Assembly (NCBI RefSeq): GCF_001194135.2
Contig: NC_068985.1
Coordinates: 15,423,161 to 15,464,626, forward strand
DNA: 41,466 nucleotides
Source: Octopus bimaculoides
Taxonomy: Eukaryota
Reading direction: 5' to 3'
A program made the translations under genes and the position numbers. Under the pieces are notes generated by a model. The model saw nothing but the letters and a program-made list of their open reading frames with translations. It ran no database searches and was not told the origin of the DNA. Below are positions 2,991-31,036 of this stretch, in pieces; within the stretch, counting starts at the first letter, position 1; each line of letters begins with the position of its first letter.

Positions 2991-3179
2991 GGCCTAAATA
3001 ACAATTCTTTTATTTGCCACAAGGGTTTAGATCAAATGCAAAGACTACAAAGGGGTTTTATTTTAATTCATTGTTTTTTTTTATGTTTTTCACAGCTTAG
3101 CAGCATGGGTGGGACAGGCTTTGCTGGAGTAATTGTCTTCAACAGTTGCTTGTCCTGCCTTCTTATTGCTAACTACTCA

Positions 3180-15195: not shown

Positions 15196-15381
15196 NNNNN
15201 NNNNNNNNNNNNNNNNNNNNNNNNNNNNNNNNNNNNNNNNNNNNNNNNNNNNNNNNNNNNNNNNNNNNNNNNNNNNNNNNNNNNNNNNNNNNNNNNNNNN
15301 NNNNNNNNNNNNNNNNNNNNNNNNNNNNNNNNNNNNNNNNNNNNNNNNNNNNNNNNNNNNNNNNNNNNNNNNNNNNNNNNN
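15196..15381. other. Assembly gap (186 N)
   Basis: Run of N. Confidence 1.
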
Positions 15382-19692: not shown

Positions 19693-19849
19693 TTATTTTG
19701 ACACTTGGCCAGTCTGTTTGCAGCCATCTTCAGGACCATCTTCTGGTTTTTCCATGTGGTATTCAGCAACGTACAATGCTTTATCAATCATCTTCGGGAT
19801 TGGTTTGATTTCAGTACCTAGCTCTTCTTCCACTTTGAAGAGATTGAAT
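19693..19849 (-). CDS. DDX6: DDX6 coding exon 10 ([52 protein letters not shown])
   Basis: 157 nt to TAA at 19693-19695, tgtttcag acceptor. Conserved GTEIKPIP and LYVAEY. Confidence 0.95.
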
Positions 19850-20589
19850 CTGAAACATAAAAAAAATTTCCAGTGTCTCTAATACACAAAACGAAGTATT
19901 ATCTGAAATGGTTAAATAAGGTTTACAATTTCAGTATGTCTTTTCAAAAATGTAAATAATTTAATAGAAAATCTAAAACAACTCCAGATTTGTCCCGCAA
20001 CATAACATTACTAAATAATTGTATATGTGGAACTGCAGACGACTAACCATTTGTAATGAAACTCGCATGGAGGTAGTTTTATAGGCTGGGACGCGTTTCT
20101 ATCCTGCTAGGCCTGTATTTGTTGCTACCCCTTACTTTTATCCTCCATCCCTTACACCCCACAAGTGCTGCCTGTAAGCATTCCCACTAATATTCACACC
20201 ATCTCCCACTTCACCCCATCGCCTGCAATGCTCCAACAACCACCTTACCCTGCTATGTGTACGAGACTGTAACAAACTACATTACACCTTGCTATCTAAC
20301 ACTCATCTGGATAGTTTTACTTGTCCCACTACCTAGTCCTACTATGCCCAACCCTGCTGTTCATTATGTATACTTTAACAGTGTGCTGTTCTTACTCCTT
20401 CCCCCATCCTAGCTTACTGTCAATCACATTAACCAAGTGAAAGCACAAGGCTGGTTAGAGTACCCTCTAGACTTACTTCACCCTTGTTAGGTAAATGTAA
20501 TTAGGAAAGACCCCCACCCCTTCCATCCTCTAAAGTGATTGGTGACTGAGCAAGAGTAAAGTGGCCTCATGAGGTCCCTATGGTCTTGT

Positions 20590-20770
20590 CTCGGTGTTGG
20601 TGCCATTAGAAAACGGTTGGCAACAAGGGGATCCAGCTGTAGAAACCAAGCCAAAGAGACAAGACTTCTAGCGTCTAAACCTATTTATTGGGAACAGCAG
20701 TTTCCAATAAAGACTTGGACCATGAACTGTTCAACCCATGCCAGCATAAAAAGCCAGACAAAATGGTGAG
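20590..20770 (+). mobile_element. Degraded RTE 3' end in DDX6 intron
   Basis: atccagctgtagaaac...caacccatgccagcat anchors. Confidence 0.6.
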
Positions 20771-20844
20771 TAGCAGACCAATATGTTTCTATGTGATTCA
20801 CAATATACTCAAATTTGGGTAGTTGGAATATACAGACCATCTCA

Positions 20845-21870
20845 ATCCATTAGCATTCAATATTATTGTCTAATGCAATGCTTATTCACCATTTTGTAAT
20901 TAATCATTTATTATCTCAGCTTCAAGATTTGATTATTTTTACAATGCCATTGCAGATAGGTGATATGTCAGATCCAGTTGGTTTGACTAAACCAGAATAT
21001 TCAAGCCAGATTAAATGCTAAATGGCTACATATTAAAACTAAAACCTAACATCAACTGGCAATATTACATTTCACATAAAAAATCAGATTCAATGCTGAG
21101 AAGTGAAATTCCTCATCACATCTAAAAATATTAGCACCTTAACAGTTGAATTAATTTGCAACAGCCACAACAAAATCACAATTTTGGCCATTACTTCAGC
21201 ATTCATATGTCAAATGTATTAATTTTTTTTTAATTGATCATGCATTATCCTGTAGCTTCAAGAGACTTCATTTTTAGGTCAGATTTGGCTAGTTGAAATG
21301 CTAAATGGTTAAAATAATTTCTGTAAGCCAAAAGGTCTCAGTGTACAAAAAGATCAAAATTTGAATGTAAGATAGCATTAATATGCACCTAACATTAACA
21401 GATTACTCACCTGTCTTCATATGTAATTAGGTTGATTGCAATACCTAGATGGCCATATCTACCAGATCTACCAATTCTGTGTAAATAAGTCTCTGAATAT
21501 TTTGGAAAATCAAAGTTTATTACTACATTCACAGCCTGGATGTCAATGCCTCTAGTGAACAAATCTGAAAGAAAGAAATTAAATCCATTTTAAATCACAT
21601 CCAAGTTTGTAAACTGACATCCCAACAATTCAGAGATTCAAAATAATTGCACCATTTTAGCAAATTAACTTTCTATACACAAACATTCAGAATAATTTGT
21701 CAAATGGAAAGCTTATTCACATCATTCTGAATTAAATATCTGATAGTTTAGAGATTGAGTTTATTTTTAGAATGATATTGTAGGGTAAGAGTGAGGTTGG
21801 ATCTGGCCTGTTTGAATATGAAATAGGAATACTTGGGCCAAGTACAGCTGGTTTAAATGTTAAAGGGTTC
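20845..21870 (-). mobile_element. Three degraded piggyBac-type MITE copies flanking DDX6 coding exon 9 (about 20845-21030, 21225-21310, 21685-21870)
   Basis: gcttattcac, tgcattatc and aaatgctaaa(t/g)ggttaa family anchors. Confidence 0.55.
21411..21564 (-). CDS. DDX6: DDX6 coding exon 9 ([10 protein letters not shown]...[13 protein letters not shown]...TYED)
   Basis: 154 nt, tctttcag acceptor, CAG|GTGAGT donor. Contains motifs V and VI. Confidence 0.97.
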
Positions 21871-24299: not shown

Positions 24300-24429
24300 C
24301 TGATTACATAAAAATAAAAATGGATAAATTTCTGAAGAATGAAAACAGCCATTTGGTAACATGTAATATTCACTACACATACATCAAATAATATACTGTA
24401 ACCCTTTCATGACAATATCCAAGTGGATA

Positions 24430-25290
24430 TTGTCATGTATTTTAAGGCCATTTTCCTTGTTATAAGAGGCCCACCTTGCAAGCTTCACAAGTTCTTAATT
24501 TCACCCCTATTCTTTACACTAATTCTCATTTCCTCCGACACTTGTGACCATATCTTGAGTCTTCAACTTCTACATTCACTTTCATATTTCCTCAGCCTAC
24601 TCCCCAGTCATCTCAGATTCCTCTTCACAACATCCATCACTGTCTCTTGCTATCATTCTTTGGAACTCCATGTCTTCTCAGGAAGGCTCTGCTTATTTAC
24701 TGAAACATTCTCATTACCATTCTACCCAGCCTTTCATGTTGCTCCACCCATCTAAATCGCAGCACACATAAACACCTTTTCAGTAGCACTTCCCTTCCTC
24801 ATTAGTATTCCACTCAGCTCTAACTTCCACATGCATCTCACTGTTGCCAAGAACGATCCACCAGGGATGCATTTTCACACCATTTCCAAGATCTAGCCCA
24901 GCATTATACTTCAGTACAATTAATCCCCTCACACCACTTCATTCTCAGTGACCACACTTGGCACATCGCACATTTAAGAGTGCATTCCAACACTATAGTC
25001 ACATCAGCTCCGACTATATTTAAGCACTCATTCCCTTTTCCACCTGCATTTTACCTCCATACATTGTTGCCTATCCAAACCAATAACACCAGAAATCACC
25101 ATGGTAAACCCTATATGCTTTGAACCAGTACCTCCATCACGTGGTAGGCCTAGTAGACACCTGGTGTATTCCAATCTGCCCATCAACCTGTTAACTGTGC
25201 ACAAACTAACATTACTAACCATTCCATTGACCCTAACAAAATGGCCAGGTCATCACTTACATGGAACCCCAAACACTTTCTCCTATCATC
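24430..25290 (-). mobile_element. Old RTE RT/C-terminal fossil in DDX6 intron
   Basis: Minus frames give FHVSDDLAIL (resembles LYADDLAL) and KNDSKRQ*WM (resembles RNEASMLRWM). Many stops. Confidence 0.45.
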
Positions 25291-25340
25291 AGAAAGCTCT
25301 CATTGTCTCTGTATTTCTATAACTAAAATTAGCCATCCCT

Positions 25341-25630
25341 CATCGTTTAACATCAGTTTTCTATGCTGGAATGGATTGGACGGCTTGGGTCTCGAAAGCC
25401 AGTAGCTGCACCAGGCTCCAATCTGTTCTGGCAATGTTTCTACAGCTGGATGCCTTTCCTTACTCCAACCACTCCAAGAGTGTAGTGGGTGAGTTTTTGT
25501 GCCACCAGCACAGGAGCTAGTCAGACAAGCCTGGCATCAATCACGTTTGGATAGTGCTTTTTATGTTTCGCTGGCATGGGAGCCAGTCAGGGGCCACATT
25601 TGGACGGTGGTTTTTATGTGCCACCAACAC
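25341..25630 (-). mobile_element. RTE 3' end in DDX6 intron
   Basis: catcgtttaacatc...gtttctacagctggatgcc...gtgccaccag units. Confidence 0.85.
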
Positions 25631-27179
25631 CGAGCAAAAATTAAAACTACAACTTAGTCTCCAATTATCCCCTAACACTAATTTTATCTCCCTCTATATG
25701 CTTTCTTCCATGTAATTCCCAATCACCAAATCTCTTTCGTCAAACATTCAATTGCCTTTAATACATTATGCAACTAACCCTCTAGCTTTCCCCAAACTTC
25801 ATTACTCTCACCACTGAAATTCTTTTTCTAGCTATGCTAGTCCCAGAAATAGATTGCCCTATGATGCAATCCCATTCTCAACCTACCCCTGTTATCTTAT
25901 CTAAAATTCAACTCCACAATTGTTCCCAGGTTATCCATCAAAAAGGCAAACCCTGTCACATCCCACCTCAGATTAAAAAACTCCTGAAACCACGATCCAC
26001 CCATGTCTGTAGCTTTTTAACCATGATTTTTCATGTGCTTATCTGTTCAGTTTGTTATGATTCTTACAAAATCCCCATCATCCCAACATTGTTAATTAAC
26101 ACTGGTGCTCTTGTCAAAGATTAAAAATTAATGGAACAAATTCCAACCAGTTTCACATTCAATTGAAACAAGGTAATGCAATCAATGAAACGGTTTTAAA
26201 CCATCTAGCTTCATATATTGGTACATAGGAGAATGGTTTCAGATGTACAACACCAAGATTTAGATAGAAATTTTAGCTTAAGAGAGGCAGTCTCAGGAAA
26301 AATTCATACTAAATTAGGATATAGCAAGTTAGAGAAATTACTTTGCCTGCTATAAAATACTCTTAAACTTGTATGGAAAGAGCAAAGCATCAACCAGAAA
26401 TTTCTACAAGCTTTGTAGACACCACATTCAATTAGATGTCTAATGGCAAGTTTATCGATGTAGAATTAAAATCTTTGCTATGCATAAAAGCTTTATTTTT
26501 GGTAAAGGTACAGTTTGAATGAAGGATGGTATGAGCAAGAAGAAAGTGTCAAATGGCTTAATACAGCATATTAAGCAATCTAAGACCATTTCATGATCTG
26601 AATGGGCCAGTTTCCTATGGATAGGTATGCAGTAAGTTTAGTGACTTGAAACTGTGCCCACCCTATAGAGAATATACTTCTGGAAGAATACAGATGAGCA
26701 TTTAAACATTTGTGCTATCCATTTAAGCTTAAGCCTAAACTAAAATTTCCTGAGGTATATTCAACTTAGCTTTAAGTAGAGGAGCAATCCTATCAAAAAC
26801 CATGGTTCTAAGTAAATGCCTCTGCGATCATACTCCAAAGCCTATATAATCTAAGGATAGGCAGTACATTTTCATTTTCTAAAACTTATCCCTTTTAATG
26901 TCAAACTATTGGATAAAGCCTAAGGGAAAAATTTTGATCATCAAGTTTGAGAACATGAGAAACATTTTAAAAGGTAATTGCTTCCATAAGATGTACCGAA
27001 TTTAAGATATGGTCACATAAGTGGTGCACATGTACAATTAACACTAAAACTACAGAAAATAGACCAAATGCCAGGGAGGAAAACTAGTTAACTTCTATTA
27101 CCTAGGTGACCAAGTCAGTAGCAAAGGTAGAAGACTCCAAGGAAATAGCTGCAAGAATGAGAATAGGCTGGGCAAAGTT

Positions 27180-29911: not shown

Positions 29912-30034
29912 CATAAAATGCTGCACAGAAACTGGGAAAGTTGCTGAATAAAGCAAGACTTGTCTGTCTCCTGGCAAATGGTTTATTATAGAGTCTAACA
30001 TGTCTTTGAAATCTTGAGATAATAGTTTGTCTCC
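29912..30034 (-). CDS. DDX6: DDX6 coding exon 6 (GDKLLSQDF...[15 protein letters not shown])
   Basis: 123 nt, ttcttacag acceptor, ATG|GTATGT donor. Second half of motif II and motif III. Confidence 0.96.
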
Positions 30035-30121
30035 CTGTAAGAAAAATTAAAATTAGTATAATTATAATATATTGATAAATGTATAAATTTATCAGGGTAA
30101 AAAAAATGAAAAAAAACTTAC

Positions 30122-30216
30122 TTCATCCAGTACAAGCATACTACATTTACTGCTTTTGACTACATTTTTATTCAGTAAATCGAGAATTCTCCCAGGTGTG
30201 GCCACTATGACATGGA
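30122..30216 (-). CDS. DDX6: DDX6 coding exon 5 (VHVIVATPGRILDLLNKNVVKSSKCSMLVLDE)
   Basis: 95 nt, not in the ORF track. ttttcag acceptor, GAA|GTAAGT donor. Contains motif Ib and the first half of motif II. Confidence 0.96.
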
Positions 30217-30801: not shown

Positions 30802-31036
30802 CTTGTACTTCGTCTCTGCCAGGATCACATCTTTCCAAAATGGGAATAGCATAAGCTCCCGTTTTACCCGTTCCGTTTTTTGCTCTGGCAACAATGTCTC
30901 TTCCAGTTAGAGCAATAGGGATGCTAGCTTCCTGAATTGGTGAGGGTTTTTCCCATCCTTTTTCAAAAATTCCCATTAATAATTCTCTTTTCAAGCAGAA
31001 GTCATCAAATTCATTTCCTTTTGTGTTCGTTACATC
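30802..31036 (-). CDS. DDX6: DDX6 coding exon 3 ([10 protein letters not shown]...Q motif, motif I...DEVQ)
   Basis: 235 nt, ttcttctag acceptor, AG|GTAAAT donor. Encodes GWEKPSPIQ and [11 protein letters not shown]. Confidence 0.97.

Follow-up and report, generated by a model that had tools for sequence, protein, structure and literature searches.

DDX6 is among the most conserved of the DEAD-box proteins. It is known as DDX6 or Rck/p54 in humans, Me31B in Drosophila, CGH-1 in C. elegans and Dhh1 in yeast. The ATPase cycle of the protein sets the time for which mRNA is repressed and the turnover of P-bodies. DDX6 and Dhh1 have intrinsically low ATPase activity and work largely by binding. In DEAD-box motif II, the first aspartate and the glutamate participate in Mg-ATP binding and hydrolysis. 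The last aspartate couples to motif III.

Natural variants of the third motif II residue, such as the DECD of UAP56, belong to active helicases. UAP56/DDX39B is a member of another subfamily, with cysteine rather than glycine at this position, and a structure exists for UAP56 in which DECD was changed to DEAD (1xtk). Together with other third-position variants (Cys, Val, Ile), UAP56 indicates that working helicases tolerate variation of the third DExD residue. In yeast, Dbp7 naturally carries DEGD and is known as a 'DEGD-box' protein. Its ATPase activity in vitro depends on RNA and is lost when the E of DEGD is changed to Q (PMC8536713, PMC9960301). Hence, DEGD is compatible with catalysis. 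Dbp7, which acts in 60S ribosome assembly in S. cerevisiae, has the same D-E-G-D tetrad as the coleoid protein described here. However, it falls in another DEAD-box subfamily, is nucleolar, acts on snR190 and pre-rRNA, is not an orthologue and acquired DEGD independently.

Here, we examine a stretch of 41,466 nucleotides from the Octopus bimaculoides genome (hereafter the window). The window contains a gene, assigned to DDX6 by sequence, in which motif II reads DEGD. We describe the distribution of this motif in the DDX6 family and consider what the glycine may do.

Results

Identity of the gene

Coding exons were found by tblastn with a human DDX6 sequence, used for locating only. Splice sites were then read directly. 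The resulting gene model is described in Table 1. GT-AG is present at all 10 coding exon borders and the joined coding sequence of 1383 nt has no internal stop codon. The spliced protein is residue-for-residue identical to P0121 (XP_014770983 / XP_029636013), annotated in RefSeq as 'ATP-dependent RNA helicase cgh-1' of O. bimaculoides and O. sinensis.

Pfam detects a DEAD domain (PF00270, E 1.6e-43, residues 87-251) and a Helicase_C domain (PF00271, E 1.7e-31, residues 287-395). The two RecA-like domains that define DEAD-box proteins of superfamily SF2 are therefore present. The closest solved structure is human DDX6 (4CT4/4CT5/5ANR; E 5.8e-202, ~78% identity), followed by yeast Dhh1, C. elegans CGH-1 and Drosophila Me31B fragments. 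In alignment to these solved relatives, RecA2 is highly conserved; in the DDX6 group, this domain binds the MIF4G domain of CNOT1 and FDF-type partners (EDC3, LSM14, PATL1, 4E-T). The top database matches are mollusc me31b, cgh-1 and DDX6 proteins (79-85% identity), as is the case for a member of the DDX6 group, and the subfamily signature DKLLSQDF follows motif II. An AlphaFold model of a coleoid protein that is 98% identical (P0001) again ranks DDX6 first by fold, at ~78% identity, and also recovers Dhh1 and eIF4A. We conclude from these sequence comparisons that the gene is an orthologue of DDX6 (Me31B/CGH-1/Dhh1). This agrees with the identity proposed in a preliminary description of the locus, which is borne out by the Pfam domains, the match to human DDX6 and the mollusc orthologues.

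The octopus protein has the same two RecA domains as human DDX6, Me31B, CGH-1 and Dhh1, with the same motifs Q, I, Ia, Ib and III-VI, and K-L-L-S-Q-D-F after motif II is also present in the human core. It differs from these proteins in having glycine for alanine at the third position of motif II, and in the substitutions E66D, L104V and I415V. All other helicase motifs are canonical: Q (GWEKPSPIQ, 82-90), I (AKNGTGKT, 107-114), Ia (PTRELA, 139-144), Ib (TTGG, 165-168), III (SAT, 243-245), IV (IIFCN, 304-308), V (TRGID, 361-365) and VI (HRIGRSGR, 386-393).

Two Octopus vulgaris models (P0007 and P0008; 421 and 412 aa) match the window protein as far as ...GRSGRY and then continue into unrelated tails. 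One of the tails holds a stretch resembling an out-of-frame reading across the exon-10 acceptor region (window 19693-21564, exons 9-10). Neither tail has a verbatim match in the window. These short models look like mis-spliced annotation isoforms and not like real C-termini. The 460-aa form is the version conserved across coleoids.

Table 1. Features of the octopus gene and the DEGD sites of microbial eukaryotes. Positions refer to the window unless a contig is named.
Feature	Position	Strand	Basis or remark
Gene assigned as DDX6/Me31B/CGH-1 orthologue, start to stop codon	19693..33262	(-)	10 coding exons, product 460 aa
Coding exons 1-5 (high to low)	33262-33159, 32965-32905, 31036-30802, 30562-30419, 30216-30122	(-)	tblastn map and splice-site reading
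Coding exons 6-10 (high to low)	30034-29912, 29129-29001, 24299-24119, 21564-21411, 19849-19693	(-)	tblastn map and splice-site reading
V104 (GTT), strand into P-loop; coleoid-specific L-to-V	30890..30892	(-)	
Motif I (Walker A) AKNGTGKT, residues 107-114, intact	30860..30883	(-)	
Motif II first half, GAT GAA = D212 E213	30122..30127 (D212 30127-30125; E213 30124-30122)	(-)	last two codons of exon 5
Phase-0 intron splitting motif II between E213 and G214, 87 nt, gtaagt...ttacag	30035..30121	(-)	splice-site reading
Motif II second half, GGA GAC = G214 D215	30029..30034 (G214 30034-30032; D215 30031-30029)	(-)	first two codons of exon 6
V239, strand before motif III; coleoid-typical I-to-V	29957-29959	(-)	
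Motif III SAT, residues 243-245, intact	29939..29947	(-)	
Microbial-eukaryote DEGD sites, M-D-E-G-D-K-L-L-S	L023:3495-3512; L026:7012-7029; L027:1442-1459		

Motif II is split by an intron and reads DEGD

On the minus strand, exon 5 ends ...CTT GTA CTG GAT GAA, followed by gtaagt. Exon 6 opens GGA GAC AAA CTA TTA after the intron end ttcttacag. Once spliced, motif II is L-D-E|G-D-K-L-L. Residues 212-215 are thus D-E-G-D; this departs from the literal D-E-A-D and conforms to the broader DExD definition. Dbp7 (DEGD) and UAP56 (DECD), both accepted as DEAD-box proteins, deviate in a comparable manner. D212 and E213, the catalytic residues, are intact and so is D215. The preliminary description had placed the motif at 30029-30127, an interval that brackets D-E-[intron]-G-D exactly. 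Its exon numbering, its reading of DEGD and its choice of position 30033 as the critical base were all reproduced by our ten-exon assembly and splice-site reading.

Position 30033, which is C on the plus strand, corresponds to the middle base of the G214 codon. A single C-to-G change at this second codon base converts alanine to glycine. As previously argued, A-to-I editing could not restore alanine: only the third base of GGA is an A, and GGG still encodes glycine. Nor is there an alternative in-frame GT donor or AG acceptor in or beside the 87-nt intron, and by tblastn the window has no duplicate of exon 6 that could encode alanine. With no such sites or second exon 6 in the window, alternative splicing that restores alanine was ruled out.

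The intron occupies the same position in Argonauta (L012), Acanthosepion (L013) and the oyster Crassostrea virginica (L025). The oyster gene reads GAG|GCT across the same phase-0 intron (L025:1715-1729 and 3143-3160), and in Lottia gigantea GAA GCT is uninterrupted (L024:2562-2594). Hence, these sequences indicate that the intron is older than the cephalopods and was lost in Lottia. The third base of the glycine codon is fourfold-degenerate. It is nonetheless the same (GGA) in all coleoids sampled (window 30032-30034; L001-L022), despite saturated synonymous sites. GGA opens exon 6, so a splicing constraint on this base is possible; alternatively, its uniformity may be chance.

DEGD is present throughout the sampled coleoids

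We inspected motif II in the best 120 database hits. Six have DEGD and every one is from a coleoid cephalopod; DEAD is present in all non-coleoid hits (114/114). The DEGD set consists of two Octopus vulgaris models, P0001, Argonauta hians, P0004 and the cuttlefish Acanthosepion pharaonis. P0001 derives from run SRR3401912, called an octopus meta-transcriptome in a paper. P0004 (cluster member P0122) is from a decapodiform known from read assemblies only.

The codons GAT GAA GGA GAC occur in the window, in the genomes of Argonauta hians and Acanthosepion pharaonis, and in 20 intronless transcript contigs. The contigs comprise one from the octopus meta-transcriptome, with 10 and nine from separate runs of two decapodiform species. 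DEGD is also found in the Octopus vulgaris annotation. Support across species therefore consists of three other cephalopod genomes or annotations and the 20 separately assembled contigs, representing at least four further coleoid species. The transcripts are from related species; for O. bimaculoides, the identical RefSeq model stands in.

The codons next to motif II vary synonymously by lineage, both before it (CTT GTA CTG, CTA GTG TTG or CTA GTA TTG) and after it (AAA CTA, AAA TTA or AAA TTG). The intronless contigs of related species run unbroken through GATGAAGGAGAC. Transcripts that span this sequence without an intron confirm the junction between exons 5 and 6. Furthermore, since the same codon is found in independent genomes and transcripts, an assembly error in a single genome cannot explain DEGD. 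We conclude that DEGD in octopus DDX6 is real. The earlier suggestion of a lineage-specific change, as opposed to an assembly error, is upheld by the coleoid-wide occurrence of DEGD in genomes and transcripts. From its distribution, A214G appears to have been fixed before octopods and decapodiforms split, and to have been kept in every coleoid sampled.

The coding sequences also show constraint. In all pairs of four coleoid DDX6 sequences dN/dS is 0.03-0.05 (~0.04). Between octopods and decapodiforms dS is 1.3-1.5 and is saturated. Coleoid DDX6 is under strong purifying selection and is expressed. No DEAD-bearing cephalopod paralogue was present among the best 120 hits of the protein database, which includes RefSeq Octopus proteins. 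From the intact ORF, the constraint, the expression and this protein search, the DEGD gene appears to be the working DDX6 of these animals.

Alanine is otherwise invariant at position 214

DDX6-type sequences were aligned across animals, plants, fungi and many protists (234 in total). Outside two lineages with DEGD, position 214 is alanine in 225/225. With the 114/114 non-coleoid database hits, this substantiates the statement that orthologues elsewhere carry DEADKLL. This argues against free variation at the position, and glycine could carry a genuine kinetic penalty or advantage. The comparison of motif II across cephalopods, other molluscs and outgroups, which had been proposed as a check, shows that DEGD is not widespread among the DDX6 orthologues sampled.

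A similar picture emerged from representatives of 50%-identity clusters. Among those with the DDX6-type K-L-L tail, 65 have DEAD and one (P0151) has DEGD. The same library contains single representatives with DEID, DEVD and DEAN; DEID and DEVD precede K-L-L. Two more distant DEAD-box proteins (P0205, P0259) have DEGD-R-L. The rarity of DEGD was assessed over ~390 sampled sequences, namely the best 120 hits, 150 cluster representatives and 117 relatives of P0151.

Two models from plants, P0002 and P0006, both named 'DEAD-box helicase 6', score near the cephalopod orthologues, and in both the helicase core is tandemly part-duplicated. We considered P0002 ('Artemisia annua', 1029 bits) as a possible contaminant. 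This was rejected: the entry is a gene model that contains a partial tandem duplication, with DEAD in each copy. Of these two plant models, motif II was read in P0002.

A second DEGD lineage

P0151, which is Dhh1-like and has a Q-rich N-terminus, is encoded by the compact genome of a microbial eukaryote. P0273 is 73% identical to P0151, was recovered from two additional samples, one an ENA metagenome and the other a Logan run, and also reads M-D-E-G-D-K-L-L-S (Table 1). Like coleoid DDX6, these are DDX6-type proteins (63% identity to the octopus protein) in which DEGD has been kept, here in two species and three samples. Unlike coleoid DDX6, they have Q/N-rich N-termini and use GGT for the glycine, where coleoids use GGA. 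Both microbial genes have GGT despite the strong difference in GC between their genomes (0.52 for P0151, 0.34 for P0273). The next relative, P0274, has DEAD. Hence, the microbial DEGD would have arisen independently of the coleoid DEGD. The sequences thus point to at least two origins of DEGD in the DDX6 family, with retention both times. The claim of a lineage-specific novelty therefore holds in part. DEGD is coleoid-wide and absent from the 225 other sequences, but it is not confined to cephalopods.

The 234-sequence alignment revealed no compensating co-substitution common to both lineages; position 214 is the only change that they share. On one of the microbial contigs, the Dhh1-like gene is preceded at a distance of ~1.7 kb, and in the same orientation, by a gene for a 622-aa protein that has a CAF1 ribonuclease domain (PF04857; L026:2462-4330). 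Both genes belong to the mRNA deadenylation and decay machinery.

Other coleoid-specific changes and their structural setting

Coleoid proteins depart from the family at 4/197 near-invariant core columns (E66D, L104V, A214G and I415V), and all four changes are conservative. Position 104, for instance, is leucine in 224/225 other sequences. Departures are at least as frequent in 50/225 of the other sequences. Against this pan-eukaryote background, coleoid DDX6 would not be considered aberrant.

A comparison with 111 other, mostly lophotrochozoan, sequences identified 18 residues that are invariant in coleoids yet rare (<=5%) elsewhere. On a neighbour-joining tree, the stem of the coleoids measures 0.083 against a median of 0.0076 for internal branches, a roughly tenfold difference. 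This pattern indicates that changes accumulated in a burst before octopods and decapodiforms separated, and that the protein was strongly conserved afterwards. Given the long stem, an episode of functional change may have occurred. We also looked for Nautilus or other non-coleoid cephalopods among unlabelled sequences. None has more than 2/18 of the coleoid-specific residues and none stood out by distance or by position in the neighbour-joining tree. The tails of P0018 (samples SRR34486200/01/04) are somewhat cephalopod-like and its motif II is DEAD.

In the P0001 model, V104 is within the strand that leads into the P-loop (103-106), the Walker B strand spans 208-212 and V239 is in the strand leading into SAT (238-243). 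A short helix (214-217) starts with G214, and pLDDT is ~90 throughout this region. L104V, A214G and I239V each remove one carbon; they fall within the strands of motifs I, II and III or immediately after them. In RecA-like ASCE NTPases, the P-loop and Walker B strands flank the SAT strand. Residues 104, 214 and 239 could thus be neighbours, and their substitution could reflect coordinated repacking of the core. L104 and I239 are retained in P0151 and P0273. Hence, glycine at 214 needs no such partners.

Remainder of the window

Scans of the window for Rfam families, ORFs and repeats found nothing bearing on DEGD. Three N-runs are present (15196-15381, 36573-36613 and 39103-39456), none near the DDX6 exons. 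The last has (TA)n (38914-39041) and CA/TA-rich simple sequence as its flanks. Upstream of DDX6, at 37314-37521, a 67-nt unit is repeated 3.2 times (74% matches). It looks like part of a dispersed repeat and has no Rfam match. The 4.7-kb intron between coding exons 7 and 8 contains a stretch that is strongly C-rich on the plus strand (24400-26000), with GC skew reaching -0.6 in 200-nt windows. It does not consist of a simple repeat; it may be an interspersed element of some age.

Discussion

The interpretation that we favour, and consider likely on the sequence comparisons, is that A214G is an ancient, fixed and conservative substitution in an active DDX6 helicase, with glycine modulating rates at most modestly. 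Coleoid DEGD is probably a mild natural variant and not a broken gene. Judging from sequence and from the analogy with Dbp7, the coleoid protein would still hydrolyse ATP in an RNA-dependent manner and function as other DDX6 proteins do. Briefly, mRNA would be clamped in the ATP state and freed on hydrolysis, in the service of translational repression, decay and P-body turnover. The third position of motif II would supply no catalytic group. G214 is predicted by the model to open the short helical turn after the Walker B strand, with one methyl lost. The loss is expected to alter local packing or flexibility, and hence the rates of hydrolysis and product release, only modestly. Because the catalytic residues are intact and Dbp7 offers a precedent, we infer RNA-stimulated ATPase activity for coleoid DDX6. 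Dbp7 is a precedent by analogy rather than proof, being of another subfamily with other partners.

A considerably less likely alternative is adaptive retuning. A214G, perhaps together with L104V and I239V, would have been selected in the coleoid ancestor for an altered rate of ATP hydrolysis or release. This would change mRNP and P-body dynamics, or another role of DDX6 such as its reported influence on A-to-I editing. Retention of glycine in all coleoids, at a position that is alanine in every other family member, speaks for selection. So do the long coleoid stem, the 18 coleoid-invariant residues and the fact that the three changes around motifs I, II and III all reduce side-chain size. P-body turnover is also known to depend on this step, as the ATPase rate of Dhh1 controls RNA release and P-body turnover (PMC5096884). 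Conversely, the microbial DEGD lineage has none of the further coleoid substitutions, and the overall departure of coleoid DDX6 from family invariants is ordinary. The four conservative changes, and the lack of compensation common to the other DEGD lineage, would fit a near-neutral, retained change at least as well as an adaptive one. The evidence assembled here thus gives no support to the preliminary idea that the glycine tunes ATPase/RNA coupling or P-body dynamics.

Massive A-to-I recoding is part of a post-transcriptional reorganisation specific to coleoids. A more elaborate proposal is that, within this reorganisation, the coleoid ancestor repacked the ATP-site core of DDX6 via L104V, A214G and I239V, so changing ATP turnover and the lifetime of the DDX6-mRNA clamp. 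We regard this as improbable. DDX6 has been reported to regulate A-to-I editing in human cells (PMC9965400), which lends retuning some support; however, the connection to RNA editing is a mere coincidence of clades.

Still harder to sustain is a loss of catalysis, whereby DEGD would weaken or abolish ATP hydrolysis and leave coleoid DDX6 mainly as a long-lived, ATP-dependent RNA clamp or scaffold. The low intrinsic ATPase activity of DDX6 and Dhh1, their mostly binding role and the otherwise invariant third position of motif II would all accord with such a change. However, D, E and the final D of motif II are intact, as are motifs I, III and VI, and constraint on the catalytic motifs is unchanged. 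In addition, the DEGD protein Dbp7 hydrolyses ATP, and third-position variants such as the DECD of UAP56 are found in active helicases, in line with the preliminary view that this position tolerates change in some other helicases. We therefore consider a loss of catalysis very unlikely. That the glycine is an artefact, or marks a pseudogene or divergent paralogue decaying beside a canonical DEAD copy, can be dismissed with near certainty given the same codon in independent genomes and in 20 transcript contigs of other species, an intact ORF with GT-AG introns, dN/dS of ~0.04, a protein identical to the RefSeq entries of two Octopus species and no DEAD-bearing cephalopod match among the best 120 hits.

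A full-text literature search for DEGD in coleoid DDX6, or for its microbial-eukaryote twin, found no description and returned papers on Dbp7 and unrelated work only. As far as searched, the coleoid-wide DEGD of DDX6 and its convergent counterpart are thus undescribed; the protein sequences themselves are public and annotated.

The finding has practical consequences. DEGD in coleoid DDX6 is no fault of annotation or assembly and needs no 'correction'. A bona fide DDX6 would also escape motif-based classifiers that require DEAD to the letter. If the effect of the glycine is negligible, DEGD is merely a conservative marker of the clade. A whole major animal clade with glycine at an otherwise invariant position is also a natural experiment on the 'A' of DEAD, and the independent second DEGD lineage strengthens that experiment.
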